Shown: positions 140 to 5,977 of the stretch, in pieces
How positions within the stretch are numbered: the stretch's first letter is position 1
Layout: each line of letters starts with the position of its first letter
DNA from: Prasinococcaceae sp. CCMP 1430
Lineage: Eukaryota > Plantae > Prasinodermophyta
NCBI GenBank assembly: GCA_013416795.1
Contig: RQSC01000008.1
Location: forward strand, 365,895 to 371,871
Direction of reading: 5' to 3'
Length of the DNA: 5,977 nucleotides
The notes under the pieces: generated by a model
Told to the model about the DNA's origin: nothing
The model's database searches: none
Seen by the model: the letters and a program-made list of their open reading frames with translations, nothing else
Program-made: the position numbers and the translations under genes

Positions 140-200
140 CTCACACCACCCCGCCCGCCGCCCACCCACCCCCGCGCACCTTCCGGGCTCGCGCACGCAG
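140..200 (+). other. Probable 3' end of an upstream intron (branch point, C-rich tract, acceptor) just before the protease ATG
   Basis: CTCAC 140-144, then an AG-free C-rich tract to CGCAG 196-200; same layout as the other introns here. Donor not identified (GTGTAG at 34 is one candidate). Confidence 0.55.
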
Positions 201-202
201 GC

Positions 203-1525
203 ATGGCGCGCGTCTCCGTGCACAAGACGGACGTCGCCGCGCAGTTCGACCGCACCACCGGCGCCGCGCTCGCGCCGCACTCGGTCGGCGTCGACGAGGC
301 CGGCGAGCCCGTCATCATCCACAACTACCTGTGAGTGCCGCGCCCGCATAAGGGGGGCGAGGGGCGCGAGCGCTCGGCGCGGCGCGAGGAAGCGGGTGGG
401 GTGTTTGGGAAGTGGGGCTGGAAGGGAGAGGGAAGCGTTCGAGGGGCGCGCACTGACCGGCGGACTTCCGCGCCGCCGCCCTCGCGCCGCCCTCGCGCCG
501 CCCTCGCGCGCCCTCGCAGGAACGCACAGTACTACGCCGACATCACCATCGGTACGCCGCCGCAGTCCTTCAAGGTCGTGATGGACACCGGCTCGTCCAA
601 CCTGTGGGTGCCCGGCTCCGGCTGCTACTCGCCGCCGTGCTGGATCCACTCGGTCTACCGCTCGAAGAAGTCGAGCACGTACGCCCCCAACGGCACCGCC
701 TTCGCCATCCAGTACGGCTCCGGAGCGCTCGAGGGCGTGCTGGACGTCGACGACGTGACGGTCGGAGGCCTCACCGCCAGGGCGCAGACCTTCGCCGAGT
801 CCACCAAGGAGCCCGGCCTCGCGTTCGTCGCAGGCAAGTTCGACGGCATCCTGGGCCTCGCGTGGAGAGGCATCGCCGTGGACGGCGTGACGCCCGTGTT
901 CGAAACGCTCGTCGAGCAGGGGGCCGTGGCGCAGCCGCTCTTCGCCTTCTGGCTCAACCGCGACGCCGGCGCCGGCGAGGGCGGCGAGCTCACGCTCGGC
1001 GGCATGGACGAGGCGCACTACACCGGCGACATCTCGTGGGTGCCGCTCACAGCAGAGACGTACTGGCAGTTCGCCTTCGAGTCGCTGACCGTGTCAGACG
1101 ACAAGGAGCCCCTCGCGGGCGCCTCGCAGGCCATCGCCGACTCGGGCACGTCGCTGCTGGCGGGCCCCACCACCATCATCGGCGACCTCAACATGAAGCT
1201 CGGCGCCAAGCCGCTGCCCACCGGGCAGTGGTTTCTCAACTGCTCGGAGGTCCCGAAGCTTCCCACCGTGACCTTCACCATCAACGGCGCGGACTATCCG
1301 CTGGAGGGCAAGGACTACGTCCTCGAGGTGGGCGGCCAGTGCCTGAGCGGCTTCATGGGCCTGGACCTGCCCGCGCAGCTCGGTCCGCAGTGGATCCTGG
1401 GCGACGTCTTCATGGGCAAGTATTACACCGTCTTCGACCAGGGCAACAAGCGGTTGGGCTTCGCCACCGCCGCCACGCAGCAGGAGTTCATCGCCGCCAG
1501 CGCGGCTAGGGCTGCGTCGGCGTGA
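203..1525 (+). CDS. Pepsin-family (A1) cathepsin D-like aspartic protease, join(203..330,520..1525), 377 aa; may be 5'-incomplete (no signal peptide)
   Basis: Splicing GT331..AG519 gives continuous ...PVIIHNYL|NAQYYADITIGTPPQSFKVVMDTGSSNLW; catalytic DTG (584) and DSG (1139), flap IQYGSG, KFDGILGL, WILGDVF; strong GC3 bias; stop TGA 1523-1525. RVSVHK resembles the propeptide start. Confidence 0.95.
331..519 (+). other. Spliceosomal intron (189 nt, phase 2) in the protease gene
   Basis: GTGAGT donor, CTGAC at 453-457, no AG until CGCAG 519; removal restores L-N-A-Q-Y-Y. Confidence 0.93.
479..519 (+). repeat. Tandem 11-bp repeat CCCTCGCGCCG (about 3.7 copies) ending in the splice acceptor
   Basis: CCCTCGCGCCG CCCTCGCGCCG CCCTCGCGCG CCCTCGCAG read directly. 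Confidence 0.85.
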
Positions 1526-1726
1526 GCGGCTGGCGCGCGACGCGAGTGCCCGCGGAGACGGGGGGAGTGAGGGAGGCAGGGTCGGTTGTTGAGCGTGGCG
1601 GGGGGGGATATGGGCGAAGGATGCGCTGCGCTCCCCGGCTTCGCGACAAGCGCGAGCAACCGCTCGCGGGCACTGGCGCGGGCTCGCGGATGGTCTCCAC
1701 CGAGAGCCGCCGCGGGGCGCGCAAAG

Positions 1727-1731
1727 TGTAA
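1727..1731 (+). promoter_or_regulatory. TGTAA polyadenylation signal of the protease gene
   Basis: TGTAA about 200 nt after the stop; UGUAA is the established chlorophyte (e.g. Chlamydomonas) near-upstream element; AT-rich word rare in this sequence. Confidence 0.65.
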
Positions 1732-2119
1732 GAAAGGGCCCGCCCGCGCGGCCGGCCAGTTTACATCTCGCCGCCGCTGTGCGCGCGCGCCTCTGGCGCG
1801 ACCCGCCGCTGGGCACCGCGCTCTCGGCGCCTCCCGAAAAAAGCCCGACACGAGTGACGAGAGCTCCCGGCCGCGCGGCGCGCCACAGCGCGCGCGTCGC
1901 GGGGGCACGGGCCAGGCCCTCGTGTGCCGCGGGGACGAAGGAGGCCTTTGGGGTTGGGGGTGGGGGAGGAGAGGGCGAAGCGGCGCCCGGACATAGGAGC
2001 ACGGCGGAGGGCAATCGCGCCGCGGCACGCTGGGTGCGCGGCGCCCCGCGCAGCCTGACATGCACCCAGCGCACCGGGTAGCGACGAGACGCCGGGGCGC
2101 CGCGCAACCGCTGAGGCTC

Positions 2120-4422
2120 ATGCGCCGCGCAGGTGTAGCAGTCGCGCTCGTGCTTGCGCTCGTGACAGTGCCCGCGCGCGCCTCAATCGCCGCGCGTGGC
2201 AAGCACGCGCCACAGCCCGCATCGAAGGACAGCGCGCCCAATGCCCCCGGCGATGCGCGCGAGTTGGGCTCGCTGCAAAGGTGTGGACCAAGTGCGAGCG
2301 AGCGAGCGAGCGAGCGAGCGAGCGAGCGCCCGTCTGTACGCGCGTCGCGACCTCGCCTGGCAGGCCGTCCTGACCATTTCGCCCTCCCTCCCTCCCTCTC
2401 CTGCTCCCTCCTTATCCCCCACACACCCCCAACCCCTTTCTCGCTCGCTCGCTCGTTCCATCTCTATGGGCCGCTCAGCTCGGCGCGCGTGGTGAGCGTC
2501 GGGCTGTACGTGTTGAACCTGGGCTCGATAGACCTGAGCAATGGCGCATTTGACGCGGACTTCTACCTGTACCTGACCGCCGAAGCCGGCTCCGGTGGGC
2601 GCTACGACGTCGCCTCTGATTACGAGTCGTACCTTCCCAACGCCGGGAGCAACCCCCGCGTGTGGGTCGTCTCCAAGCTCAAGAGCAGGACCAACCTCAC
2701 CTCGCAATACAGAATGAAGGGGAAGTTCTACTTCGAGCCGGACGGTGAGTGCGCAGCGCTCGCGCGCACGGACCTGAGTGCGCGCGCCGCCGCCAGCGCC
2801 CCGCGCCCACGTTCGCTCCTGGTGGCTTGCCCCGATGCCACCTCGTCCGTGCGCGCTCTCGCTCACCCGCCTCTCCCCTGCGCGCGCGCGCCACGGCGTG
2901 GCGACTGCGCCCCCCGACGTCCACCGCACGGCCCCGTGCAGTGAGCGTGTATCCCTTCGACAAGTTCGCTCTGCCGGTCCACTTCGAGGACCCCCACGAG
3001 GTGCGCCCGCGCCCGGGCTTGCACGCGCATGTGCTCTCTCGCGTCCGTGCGCCTCCGACCCCGACCGCCATGCTGTGCGCCGCCCGCCACTGTGTCGCTT
3101 GCGCGACGTGCGCGCACTCACGCAGCTGCGACCATTTCCTGCGCGTGCGCTCCGCGGACGCTCGCTCAGGAGCTCGACTCGCTCCAGTTCGTGGTGGATA
3201 ATAAGTACAACTCCCTTAGCAGCAACATCGCCATGCCCGGCTTCAGCCGTGCGGCGTCGGCCAACTTCCGCGCGAGCGTGACCAACACGACGTACCCGGG
3301 CGGCAAGACATTCAGCAGATTCACTGGCACCGTGTACATTGCCAGACCAAAGGTGAACGCGCGACAGTCGTCTCAAAGAGCCGAGCGCGGCATCCGCCGA
3401 GTTGCGCTCGCGAGCTGGCGCACGTGCGCGCCTGCCATCGCGCGTCGCGGAGCGCGCTGGGCGAGGAGCTGACGCACGCTCTCTTGTGCTCTCTCGCTCG
3501 CTGTCGCTCGCGCGCGAGCAGCTCAACGCCGCGCTGAAGGCGTTCCTGCCCGCCGTGATCGTCCTGCTGGTCGTCGCGCTCAACTCGAGCATCCCGTCGC
3601 GCCACGCGACCGCGCGCGCGTCGGTGGCTGGGTCGTCGCTGGTGGCGCTCGTCCTCTTTCACTCGGTGCGGTCCGCGCGAGCGCGAGCGCGCGCGAGGGC
3701 GTGCGCGCAGACCGCACGCAAGCGCGCGCGGCGCGGCGCACGCCCGTGGGAGGCGCTGACCGCGCTGGCGCGCGCGCTCGTGCGGCCCTCTCTCTGCCAT
3801 GTGGCGTGGACTTGCCGCCGCCCCTCGTCGCTATCGCCAGAACCTGCTGGCCCAAGTGCCTAGCACCGGCCAGGTCACCCTCGCGGACTCCTTCATGGCA
3901 ATGTGCTACGTGCTCATCGTGCAGGCCTTCGTGGTGTGCCTCCTGCTCCTGCGCTCTGCCGAGGCCGGCGCTGACGCACTGGAGGCCGAGGTGCACGTGT
4001 GCGGCCAGCTCGCGCAATGGGTGCTCACGCCGATGGCGGTGCTCGCCGTCGTCTACTCGGGGCTGACAGGTACCGCGCGCGCTCGGGTCGCCGCGCTGCT
4101 CTTCGCTCCAACGCCGTGCGCTGACGCGCCGCGCGCGCGCGCAGGTGCCATGCTGGCGTATCTCTTCGGCGCCGTTGCCATCGCCGCGCGGCGCTACACG
4201 CTCCTGCGCGCGCGTGGCTCGCCGGTGCTGGCGGGGCTCGGCTCCTCGAAGGGCGCGGGCCGAGCGCGCCGATTCGACGGCAGCGGCGGGGGCGCCGGCG
4301 CGGGGGGCAGCGATGGCTCTTCCTTTCGGCTGTTTGGCATGAGCCCCATCGCCGCAGAGAGCGAGCTCACCGCGCTGGCGCCCGAGGCGGAGCGCGCGCA
4401 GCCGTTCATGCACGCCAGCTAG
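2120..4422 (+). CDS. Cys-less pentameric ligand-gated ion channel subunit (GLIC/ELIC-like), join(2120..2280,2479..2744,2942..3000,3170..3352,3522..3665,3841..4069,4145..4422), 439 aa
   Basis: All six GT-AG joins are phase-compatible and total 1320 nt. Signal peptide MRRAGVAVALVLALVTVPARA; beta1-2 VSVGLYVLNLGSIDLSNGAFDADFYL; loop-7 YPFD; pre-M1 IARP; M1 with Pro (KAFLPAVIV); M2 ARASVAGSSLVALVLFHS; M2-M3 VPSTGQVTLAD; M3; M4 with Pro (WVLTP). Confidence 0.88.
2281..2478 (+). other. Channel intron 1 (198 nt, phase 2; in-frame and stop-free)
   Basis: AAG|GTGTGG donor, CTGAC 2370-2374, long pyrimidine tract, CTCAG acceptor; contains low-complexity repeats. Confidence 0.8.
2294..2328 (+). repeat. 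(GCGA)8 tetranucleotide microsatellite
   Basis: Eight perfect GCGA units plus GCG. Confidence 0.95.
2745..2941 (+). other. Channel intron 2 (197 nt, phase 1)
   Basis: GTGAGT donor, CTCAC 2862-2866, TGCAG acceptor; joins FYFEPD to VSVYPFD. Confidence 0.9.
3001..3169 (+). other. Channel intron 3 (169 nt, phase 0)
   Basis: GAG|GTGCGC donor, CTCAC 3117-3121, CTCAG acceptor; joins FEDPHE to ELDSLQFVVD. Confidence 0.85.
3353..3521 (+). other. Channel intron 4 (169 nt, phase 0), tandem GAG-CAG acceptor
   Basis: AAG|GTGAAC donor, CTGAC 3469-3473; joins IARPK to LNAALKAFLP (pre-M1 to M1). Confidence 0.85.
3666..3840 (+). other. Channel intron 5 (175 nt, phase 0)
   Basis: GTGCGG donor, CTGAC 3756-3760, GCCAG acceptor; joins end of M2 (LFHS) to NLLAQVP. 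Confidence 0.88.
4070..4144 (+). other. Channel intron 6 (75 nt, phase 1; in-frame and stop-free)
   Basis: CAG|GTACCG donor, CTGAC 4121-4125, CGCAG acceptor; GCGC low complexity like the other introns. Confidence 0.7.
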
Positions 4423-4454
4423 CCGGCGCGGTCTGTGCGACAATCAGCTTGTGC

Positions 4455-4459
4455 TGTAA
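4455..4459 (+). promoter_or_regulatory. TGTAA polyadenylation signal of the channel gene
   Basis: TGTAAA 33 nt after TAG 4422. Confidence 0.7.
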
Positions 4460-4530
4460 ATTCCCACGCCCCATCCCACGATTCGAGACGAGAGCACGTT
4501 CGGGACGGCGGACAGAAAGAATGAGAATGT

Positions 4531-4535
4531 TTACA
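4531..4535 (-). promoter_or_regulatory. TGTAA polyadenylation signal of the ABC gene
   Basis: TTACA on + strand, about 110 nt past the ABC stop in the - direction. Confidence 0.7.
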
Positions 4536-4605
4536 TGTCTTCACAGTGTGTGTACATCGAAGGCTGGCTGCCTGCCCCCGAGGGGCGAGGCGAGAGCAGG
4601 TAGGA

Positions 4606-4640
4606 GGGGGTGGAGGGGGGGCGGGGGTAAGGGGGGGGGG
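4606..4640 (+). repeat. G-run cluster (G5, G7, G5, G10); C-rich tract in the ABC gene 3' UTR
   Basis: GGGGG TGGA GGGGGGG C GGGGG TAA GGGGGGGGGG directly adjacent to the stop codon. Confidence 0.85.
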
Positions 4641-4642
4641 CT

Positions 4643-5608
4643 TCAGCCGCGCAGCACGGCGTTGGAGGAGAGCTTGATGGTGGTCGCCAGGCGCCCCGCC
4701 GCCCAGCCGTTGTTGCGGTCGTAGCCCTGCTTGGCCTTGCTCGGGTTGTGCAGCTTGCCCTCCGCCGCCAGCTTCTCGCAGATGACCTTCTCCTCCCTGA
4801 GCCACTTCTCGACGGTGCGGCGCAGGCCGACCTCCTTGAGGCCCTCGACGCCCTCGCACTTGTCGAAGATTTGCATGTGGCCGCGCGCGACGTACATGAG
4901 GTGGGTGGCCCACTCGTCGAGGCCGTCGAAGATGTGCGTCGCGTAGATGATGGTGGCGCCGCGCTCCTCGCACTCCTGCTTGAGGAAATTCATCAGGTCG
5001 CGGCGCACGAGCACGTCCAGGTCGACGGTGATCTCGTCGAGGAGCAGCACCTGGAAGGGGCGCAGCAAGCCCATGGCCAGCTGCACGCGCCGGCGCTGGC
5101 CGTCCGACACCTGGTGCATGCGCCACTCGAGGTTGACGTCGAGCACGTCGACGACGCGCTGGCGGCGCGCGGCGCTCACGCCGCGCACGCTGTCCAGCAT
5201 GCGGCGCGCGGGGAAGTCGCCCGCGAGGGGCACGTCGTAGCCCGCGAAGGCGACGTCGCGCCGCCACTGCCCGCCCAGGTAGGAGCACTCGCCCGTCCGC
5301 GAGAGCTCGGTGTCGTGGAAGGCGCTGCGCCCCAGCACGCGCACCATGTCGCGCTCGACCATGTGGCGGCCGGCGAGCAGCTTGAGCAGCGTGGTCTTGC
5401 CCGCGCCGTTGGCGCCGATGAGCAGGCAGAGGTCGCCGCGGCCGAGCTCGAAGCTCATGTCGCTGATCATGGGGTCCACGCCGGGCAGCGGCTGGCCGTC
5501 GGTGCCGGGGTAGGTGAATGTCAGGTTCTTGACCGCCACGACGTCCGCGCCCGCGAACGCGTGCGGCGCGGCCTCGGACGCGGCCAGCGCCGCCTCCTCC
5601 GCCGAGAC
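4643..5608 (-). CDS. ABCI20: Soluble ABC ATPase (single NBD, no transmembrane domain), ABCI19-21/yeast CAF16 group, ABCI20-like; 5' end uncertain, probably starts at 5808
   Basis: Walker A GANGAGKT (5416-5393), variant signature VSDGQRRR, Walker B LLLDE, YATH switch; LTFTYPG.DG, RVLGRSAFHDT, WRRDVAFAG and C-terminal NNGWAAGRL...SSNAVLR match my recollection of Arabidopsis ABCI20. The track's start at 5737 is GTG, not ATG. Confidence 0.9.
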   Translation of the reverse strand, partial: VSAEEAALAASEAAPHAFAGADVVAVKNLTFTYPGTDGQPLPGVDPMISDMSFELGRGDLCLLIGANGAGKTTLLKLLAGRHMVERDMVRVLGRSAFHDTELSRTGECSYLGGQWRRDVAFAGYDVPLAGDFPARRMLDSVRGVSAARRQRVVDVLDVNLEWRMHQVSDGQRRRVQLAMGLLRPFQVLLLDEITVDLDVLVRRDLMNFLKQECEERGATIIYATHIFDGLDEWATHLMYVARGHMQIFDKCEGVEGLKEVGLRRTVEKWLREEKVICEKLAAEGKLHNPSKAKQGYDRNNGWAAGRLATTIKLSSNAVLRG

Positions 5609-5628
5609 CTGGGGGCGGCCGACGGGCG

Positions 5629-5808
5629 TCACGGGGGCTGGCGGCGCAGCGGCGCCTGCCGCGCGGGCTGCGGCGCCGGCGCGGAGGACGCCGCCCACTT
5701 GGCCCAGTGCGAGCCCGTCGGCGCGATCTCGGGGCACACCTCGTCGGCGCCGAACTGCGTGCCGGCGTGGCCGCCCGTCCAGCCGGTGACGCTGATTGGC
5801 ACCGGCAT
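5629..5808 (-). CDS. 59-codon coding-like frame MPVPISVTGWTGGHAGTQFGADEVCPEIAPTGSHWAKW..., probable N-terminus of the ABC protein, out of frame with it
   Basis: ATG in A-rich context (ACAAAAATG); 58 of 59 sense codons end in G/C; ends CCC CCG TGA at 5629. Confidence 0.6.
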   Translation of the reverse strand: MPVPISVTGWTGGHAGTQFGADEVCPEIAPTGSHWAKWAASSAPAPQPARQAPLRRQPP

Positions 5809-5842
5809 TTTTGTCTTTCTCCTTTGCTGTGTTGTTGTGCGG

Positions 5843-5880
5843 CGTGCGCGCACGTGCGCGTGCGCGTGCGTGTGTGTGTG
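5843..5880. repeat. 38-nt perfectly alternating pyrimidine-purine tract (CG/TG/CA), includes the 14-bp palindrome CGCGCACGTGCGCG
   Basis: Read directly; palindrome at 5847-5860. Confidence 0.85.
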
Positions 5881-5977
5881 GTTGAGGCGGGGCGAGGCGG
5901 ACTGGAGGCGTGTGCGCACGGGCCGTGCCGCGCGGCGCTCGCTCGCCGCGACTCGCGTGCCGCGCGCGCGCTGTGGC

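Follow-up and report, generated by a model that had tools for sequence, protein, structure and literature searches.

A probable seven-exon gene for a Cys-less pentameric ligand-gated channel subunit, with a candidate fifth helix, in a marine green alga

Ion channels of the pentameric ligand-gated type (pLGICs) are best known as the neurotransmitter receptors of animals. We analysed a 5,977-nucleotide stretch of DNA from Prasinococcaceae sp. CCMP 1430 (contig RQSC01000008.1, positions 365,895 to 371,871 of the forward strand; hereafter the window), in which an earlier note, made from the letters alone, had pointed to a hidden channel gene of this superfamily. The window is eukaryotic DNA with 70% G+C and carries three genes. 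The segment 2120-4422 is very likely a nuclear gene with seven exons, intact and under selection, that belongs to a marine green alga and encodes a Cys-less pLGIC subunit (a Pro-loop receptor) of about 439 residues. Exons 2-6 match, in order, a family of green algal proteins, and this family is linked to prokaryotic channels of known structure by profile, profile-profile and structural comparisons. The algal members also share a hydrophobic segment after the fourth transmembrane helix (M4), which is probably a fifth membrane span.

The exon limits that we worked out from the sequence coincide exactly with those given in the earlier note (Table 1). All six introns have GT..CAG boundaries and measure 75-198 nt. 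The G+C content of the exons is 0.75-0.96 at third codon positions (GC3) and 0.26-0.65 at second positions (GC2), the same pattern as in both neighbouring genes; that of the introns is flat, at 0.67-0.84 in each of the three phases. A family profile was built from seven homologs and run against the 114 stop-to-stop segments of both window strands. It matched exons 2-6 only, in colinear order, and these exons tile end to end along the full-length homologs of Tetraselmis, Mesostigma and an intronless picoeukaryote gene (P0024). In multiple alignments with P0024, junctions 2/3, 3/4, 4/5 and 5/6 are gapless and identically spaced, and in P0022, a closer relative (64% identical), exons 2 and 3 are read as a single continuous open reading frame (ORF). 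BLASTP with exon 6 matched P0024 at 2e-13 and P0004 at 4e-10. The splice signals, the coding-type GC3 and the colinear profile matches thus bear out the seven-exon gene that the earlier note had described.

Positions 146-5941 of the window have a near-identical counterpart (98.9%) in a scaffold from Tara Oceans, L007, and the two sequences differ at 5.3 positions per kb in the exons and at 19 per kb in the introns. Five of the seven exon differences fall at third codon positions (two of four in exon 7 taken alone). A pseudogene was rejected on the grounds of the intact frames and the predominance of third-position differences, and bacterial contamination on the grounds of the spliceosomal introns and the eukaryotic neighbour genes. 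The (GCGA)n microsatellite of intron 1 (2294-2330) is 8 nt shorter in L007; because of this length difference, the ORF-style protein calls from sister contigs (P0001 and P0019) start in different frames as they enter intron 1. Neither intron 1 nor intron 6 shifts the frame or contains a stop, which is why the ORF list includes the long ORFs 2060-2944 and 3799-4422. For the same reason, the database proteins of this locus are only ORF-style calls of 87-231 residues that run into introns, much as the earlier note had expected of automated annotation.

An exhaustive phmmer search with exon 2 returned nine proteins, among them the ORF call of the locus itself (100% identity) and P0003, P0004 and P0005 (E 6e-13 to 4e-10); no Chlamydomonas or Chlorella protein was among the nine. 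P0003 (Mesostigma viride Mv11930, 527 residues) is 48% identical to exon 2, P0004 (a complete MMETSP transcript, 448 residues) 44%, and P0005/P0024 49%. Two further relatives, P0010 and P0012 (TSEL_026244), come from Tetraselmis striata. P0024 is a 385-residue intronless gene on Tara and JGI marine contigs (L001-L004), where it lies in gene-dense, eukaryote-like surroundings and adjoins genes for Peptidase_S41, Glyco_transf_22 and HSP20 proteins. Its presence on 21 contigs, drawn from several samples, points to a common marine picoeukaryote as the probable host. A word search with the family alignment found at least four proteins, including a bacterial bridge (P0033). A word search with the stop-free ORF 2060-2941, using words from its exon 2 part, gave no match, and a back-translated exon 2 pattern run against metagenome contigs gave 381 pattern matches with none confirmed. 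Members of the subfamily come from this alga, from Tetraselmis, from a picoeukaryote and from Mesostigma, a streptophyte, a spread over three green phyla. The public gene models P0003 and P0012 look partly wrong, with an unrelated N-terminal extension, insertions or gaps at M1-M2 and a divergent C-terminal half, so annotation pipelines seem to struggle with the subfamily in other algae as well.

Three independent lines of comparison (profile, profile-profile and structural) assign this family to the Pro-loop superfamily of pentameric ligand-gated channels, with sTeLIC and GLIC as its nearest solved relatives, in agreement with the prokaryote-type channel that had been proposed. Searched against PDB sequences, the family profile matched sTeLIC from pre-M1 to M3 (E 5.8e-7) and GLIC from the Pro-loop to M3 (E about 1e-5), and the best 60 of 102 matches (E up to 10) were all prokaryotic pLGICs. 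The bacterial protein P0033 matched the profile at E 1e-25. Myxobacterial ORFs, found by tblastn at E values down to 3e-15, pass the Pfam gathering scores for Neur_chan, and an hhalign comparison of the algal alignment with a bacterial one (myxobacterial sequences and others) gave 99.7% and E 1.8e-26 over 279 columns, from β1 to M4. The algal family also gave weak matches to NCBIfam LGIC_1 (20-25 bits). In the ESM atlas, the clusters nearest to exon 2 were Neur_chan_LBD (score 0.91, 179 shared features), a result that we used as a lead only.

AlphaFold2 models were built for the natural homologs P0024 and P0004, with the exons of the window entered as separate alignment rows. Both models, with a predicted local distance difference test score (pLDDT) of 78 for P0024 and 74 for P0004, show a β sandwich followed by helices. 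Foldseek, which the earlier note had recommended for a comparison with GLIC, was run on a homolog model and returned sTeLIC (E 2.5e-17) and GLIC (E 2e-16, TM score 0.73), together with DeCLIC, GABA-A and GlyR. VIA-align placed model residues 30-325 on GLIC residues 11-314 (Z about 20, root-mean-square deviation 3.2-3.7, about 279 residues), and the structures also superposed on GluCl and GABA-A chains. By sequence, the nearest solved and annotated relatives of the algal family are prokaryotic; in the atlas, P0024 lies near diatom and mollusc clusters. Membership of the eukaryotic Cys-less clade and a bacterial origin are both candidate histories of the family.

Seven positions are listed as conserved across the superfamily, with the loop Pro at 100% and the loop Asp at 93% (Table 1 of PMC4795631). 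All seven residues are present in the exons of the window, in a register taken from the profile-GLIC and homolog alignments (Table 1). YPFD aligns with YPFE, FPFE or FPFD of the homologs and bacterial channels and with YPFD of GLIC, and the PGF and Arg of exon 4 align with TGW160 and R192 of GLIC. The loop lacks flanking cysteines, as had been noted from the letters, and there is no Cys anywhere in exons 2-4; the protein is therefore not a Cys-loop receptor in the strict sense. That metazoan type was rejected, given that exons 2-4 cannot hold the pair of cysteines 13 residues apart. The ectodomain is compact, and the models begin with β1 and have no N-terminal helix. In the window, DADFYLYL is followed by TAEAGSGG, without the β2 Trp that the bacterial relatives have at this place, which upholds a further reading of the earlier note. 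The NLT sequon (N-x-T) in exon 2 is kept in all algal members and is not found in the bacterial relatives. The hydropathy of exon 1 peaks across residues 1-25, and the relative P0002 has a similar signal peptide and linker immediately ahead of β1; an in-frame ATG at 2060 offers an alternative start upstream. The signal-peptide-like N-terminus and the sequon fit a predicted extracellular or luminal ectodomain.

The M2 register, counted back from the 23' Pro in the profile-GLIC alignment, reads R0', S2', S6', V9', L13', S16' and N17'. At the mouth of M2, Thr occupies -2', Ala -1' and Arg 0', and the linker between M1 and M2 has a basic character (SRHATAR); in the alignments, the cytoplasmic mouth is free of acidic residues throughout the algal members. 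In animal receptors, P-A-R filters are anionic and G-E-K/R filters cationic. The T-A-R mouth without Glu resembles that of anion-selective channels, and anion or weakly selective conduction is therefore, by analogy and with low confidence, the better guess.

The following mode of action would be compatible with these features. The signal peptide may place a compact, Cys-free and probably N-glycosylated β-sandwich ectodomain outside the cell or in a lumen, and five subunits, judging from the fold, would form a pore lined by M2. Binding of a ligand to the ectodomain, or a pH change there, could be relayed through the YPFD loop, its putative salt-bridge partner the pre-M1 Arg, and the Pro of the M2-M3 loop, three coupling elements that are all present in the window. 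Such a relay would open a hydrophobic gate at 9'/13', and the Thr-Ala-Arg mouth, with no Glu, might then favour anion or weakly selective conduction. M5 would cross the membrane again and leave a cytoplasmic C-terminal tail, which could assume the trafficking or regulatory role of the missing M3-M4 loop.

The M3-M4 link consists of three residues in both homolog models, in accordance with the very short loop that the earlier note had described. In the window, M4 forms the end of exon 6 (QLAQWVLTPMAVLAVVYSGLT), and an extra hydrophobic segment opens exon 7, followed by RRYTLLRAR and the Gly/Ser-rich tail. Every algal member has such a segment after M4, then a K/R cluster and a tail that varies between members, so that the chain continues with a fifth helix and a tail of 35-100 residues; the bacterial relatives stop at M4. 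Both AlphaFold2 models contain a separate fifth helix (at 326-380 and at 352-372), outside the region that could be superposed on solved channels. M4 and the extra segment add up to 41-46 residues, interrupted in each of the two models by a helix break of 4-5 residues. Based on hydropathy, the positive-inside rule and the monomer models, M5 probably crosses the membrane as a fifth span and thereby brings the C-terminus back to the cytoplasmic side. The architecture had been called GLIC/ELIC-like: the Cys-less loop, the lack of an N-terminal helix and the few-residue M3-M4 link agree with that description, whereas the chain runs on after M4 into the fifth hydrophobic helix and C-terminal tail instead of ending there. 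A search of the accessible literature found no description of a fifth helix in this superfamily. The mention of "five transmembrane" segments for Alvinella Alpo2 is attributed by its authors to the MX helix, and sequences were trimmed after M4 in PMC4795631, which is hence silent on M5. We tentatively propose, at slightly below even confidence, an ancient five-helix subfamily that spans the green lineage (this alga, Chlorophyta and the early streptophyte Mesostigma), in which a cytoplasmic tail delivered by M5 has replaced the cytoplasmic M3-M4 domain.

Several observations weigh against the assignment of 2120-4422 as a channel gene of this form. Pfam Neur_chan_LBD (PF02931) and Neur_chan_memb (PF02932), the profiles that the earlier note had named as a check, matched none of the exons, and a Pfam scan of exon 6, the in-frame intron 6 and exon 7 read together was also blank. 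The full-length homologs P0003, P0004, P0005, P0008, P0010, P0024 and P0031 gave no Neur_chan match even at E up to 1-10, and single-exon phmmer searches of PDB sequences with exons 2 and 5 found no match. The evidence for the fold was obtained by proxy, through homologs that are 33-48% identical to the exons of the window. Exons 1 and 7 gained no homology support from the seven-homolog profile or BLASTP; a BLASTP search with 3841-4419 against P0024 and P0004 stopped at M4 and left exon 7 uncovered, so that its likeness to the family consists of the M5-plus-basic pattern. The removal of the in-frame introns 1 and 6 likewise lacks homology support, and the gene model as a whole was derived from genomic sequence. 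Pentamer formation, conduction, selectivity and a ligand are putative properties, as is the sensing of chemicals or pH that the earlier note had suggested. In the window, M5 reaches RR after about 14-16 hydrophobic residues, few for a membrane span. The pLDDT of M5 in the models is only about 65-80, and the antiparallel packing of M4 and M5 is putative too.

The blank Pfam and single-exon PDB searches would be expected if the gene encoded an unrelated membrane protein with four or five transmembrane segments that happens to hold YPFD. A Pfam Neur_chan match is a practical, not a defining, criterion of the superfamily; the bacterial relatives reach its gathering scores and the full-length algal homologs do not, so a blank result taken literally as a refutation would have misled. 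The profile matches to PDB entries, the hhalign result, and the Foldseek and VIA-align matches along the whole chain contradict an unrelated protein, which we regard as barely credible. A partly wrong gene model deserves more weight and is still improbable: intron 1, intron 6 or both might be retained as coding sequence, or translation might start at 2060, in either case yielding a longer protein. Both introns are multiples of three without stops, and the two long ORFs read through them. Against this, their composition is non-coding, intron 1 carries the 8-nt indel between near-identical contigs, and the homologs have no insertion at the position of intron 6, where the M4-M5 turn measures merely 1-4 residues. 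Together with the splice signals, these are the grounds on which the two introns were removed. A protein with the pLGIC fold that is no longer ligand-gated, such as a scaffold, a non-conducting receptor or a constitutively leaky pore, is marginally more improbable still. It would suit the compact ectodomain without a β2 Trp and the fact that no ligand-site residues could be assigned, and according to Jaiteh et al. (PMC4795631), none of the unicellular pLGICs has a known biological role. However, the coupling residues have all been kept (the Asp of YPFD, the pre-M1 Arg, the M1 Pro and the M2-M3 Pro), as have the 0' Arg and the hydrophobic 9' residue, and conservation of the family over three green phyla, with differences mainly at third codon positions, also speaks for a working channel. 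The alternative to which we give the most weight, although we consider it rather unlikely, concerns M5: the extra segment may continue M4, or form a surface or re-entrant helix, in an ordinary four-helix Cys-less channel with an extracellular tail. Its shortness in the window and the moderate model confidence in this part are in line with such a structure, and membrane placement is not visible from monomer models. The combined length of M4 and the extra segment, the helix break in both models, the K/R cluster that comes next in every member in agreement with the positive-inside rule, and the end of the bacterial relatives at M4 favour the fifth span instead.

Table 1. Features of the window, with the matches of exons 2-6 to the family profile
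Feature	Position	Strand	Description	Family profile positions	E-value
Pepsin-type aspartyl protease	203-1525	+	Single GT..AG intron at about 335-529; Pfam Asp match in the second exon, E 4.6e-104		
Channel gene (probable)	2120-4422	+	Seven GT..AG exons, 1320 nt, 439 codons and TAG		
Exon 1	2120-2280	+	ATG at 2120; hydrophobic signal-peptide-like N-terminus, then linker; donor aag/GTGTGG (exon/intron)		
Intron 1	2281-2478	+	198 nt; in frame, stop-free; holds (GCGA)n microsatellite		
Exon 2	2479-2744	+	Ectodomain strands β1 to β6; VSVGLYVLNLGSID, GAFDADFYLYL, conserved NLT sequon; no Trp after GAFDADFYLYL	26-138	1.7e-25
Exon 3	2942-3000	+	Pro-loop (β6-β7); YPFD at 2950-2961; no flanking Cys	138-156	0.0085
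Exon 4	3170-3352	+	β7 to β10; conserved PGF (F 3242-3244 = β9 aromatic); pre-M1 Arg 3344-3346 in ARPK	156-223	6e-12
Exon 5	3522-3665	+	M1 (Pro 3549-3551), basic M1-M2 linker, M2 as far as 16'; 0' Arg 3615-3617	213-271	8e-16
Exon 6	3841-4069	+	End of M2, M2-M3 loop (Pro 23' 3859-3861), M3, very short link, M4	266-342	9e-14
Intron 6	4070-4144	+	75 nt; in frame, stop-free; GTACCG..GCGCAG; composition non-coding in the reading frame		
Exon 7	4145-4422	+	Putative M5 AMLAYLFGAVAIAA, basic cluster RRYTLLRAR, Gly/Ser-rich tail, TAG 4420-4422; GC3 0.89		
Seven conserved residues	Y, P and D of YPFD 2950-2961; β9 F 3242-3244; pre-M1 Arg 3344-3346; M1 Pro 3549-3551; M2-M3 Pro 3859-3861	+	Superfamily-conserved positions		
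TGTAA	4455-4459	+	Probable poly(A) signal of the channel gene; direct sequence reading		
ABC-type ATPase	4643-5737	-	ABC_tran 1.9e-18, AAA_21; tail to tail with the channel gene		

The channel gene is flanked by a gene for a pepsin-type aspartyl protease and one for an ABC-type ATPase, the true start of which may lie further upstream, near 5806. TGTAA is the pentamer that serves as the poly(A) signal in green algae. It occurs soon after the stop codon of all three genes of the window, at 1727-1731 (+), 4455-4459 (+) and 4531-4535 (-), a placement that fits a green-algal origin and very short 3' untranslated regions.

A subfamily that is invisible to Pfam is found over deep green branches, including a basal streptophyte, which makes it likely that presence/absence surveys relying on domain models are incomplete. 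If the five-helix subfamily is real, surveys in which streptophytes and other algae are said to have lost pLGICs would be undercounts. If M5 is a true span, these proteins would offer a natural experiment on moving the functions of the cytoplasmic M3-M4 loop to the C-terminus, and structural and functional studies would gain a eukaryotic single-subunit channel that is compact and Cys-free. For annotation, the locus illustrates how in-frame, stop-free introns lead ORF-type callers to truncated or chimeric proteins.

That Chlorophyta have Cys-less pLGICs and that land plants lack them was reported in 2016 (Jaiteh, Taly and Henin, PMC4795631) and restated in 2024 (PMC11085791). The present gene is hence not a new kind of channel; what may be new is the Pfam-escaping subfamily, its spread over the green lineage and its M5-plus-tail architecture. 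The Cys-less Pro-loop receptors of protists, including those of Chlorophyta (PMC4795631), fall in the same category, a likeness by description and not sequence by sequence. In contrast to those chlorophyte receptors, the subfamily of this alga, Tetraselmis, Mesostigma and the picoeukaryote escapes the Pfam models.

Among the solved channels, GLIC (from Gloeobacter) and sTeLIC (from a Tevnia symbiont) give the best sequence-profile matches. They resemble the algal family in the F/YPxD loop without a Cys pair, the missing N-terminal helix and the minimal M3-M4 link, they have the pre-M1 Arg, the M1 Pro and the M2-M3 Pro in common with it, and the whole chain superposes. The identity is only 16-17%, however, and unlike these two channels, the algal family has a predicted signal peptide, the conserved N-x-T sequon and no β2 Trp, as well as the fifth helix (as predicted) and tail after M4; the M2 mouth is of the T/N/Q-A-R type, without the -2' Glu of GLIC. 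The present gene is, moreover, nuclear, intron-bearing and eukaryotic.

The myxobacterial homologs (metagenome-assembled genomes of Polyangiaceae, Kofleriaceae and Byssovorax; L009-L013) share with the algal proteins the G-T/A-W/F-D-A-D-F-Y-L-Y motif of β2, an FPFD loop and M1-M4. Because the search pattern that led to them was itself based on this motif, they need not be the closest prokaryotes overall. They differ in their low identity (19-25%), a Trp after DFYLYE, a Cys-rich stretch before β1 and a chain that ends at M4. Three of these ORFs (L009:2851-3870, L010:2762-3856 and L013:2728-3951) carry the GTWDADFYLYE form of the motif shared with the algal family and a conserved C-x-G-P-x-x-C-C just ahead of β1. 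The anion-selective Cys-loop receptors GluCl, GABA-A and GlyR are an equally good structural match (Z about 20), and the Ala at -1' and Arg at 0' of the algal pore resemble their P-A-R filter. Unlike these receptors, to which it is 11-14% identical, the algal protein has no Cys loop, no Pro at -2' and no large M3-M4 domain.

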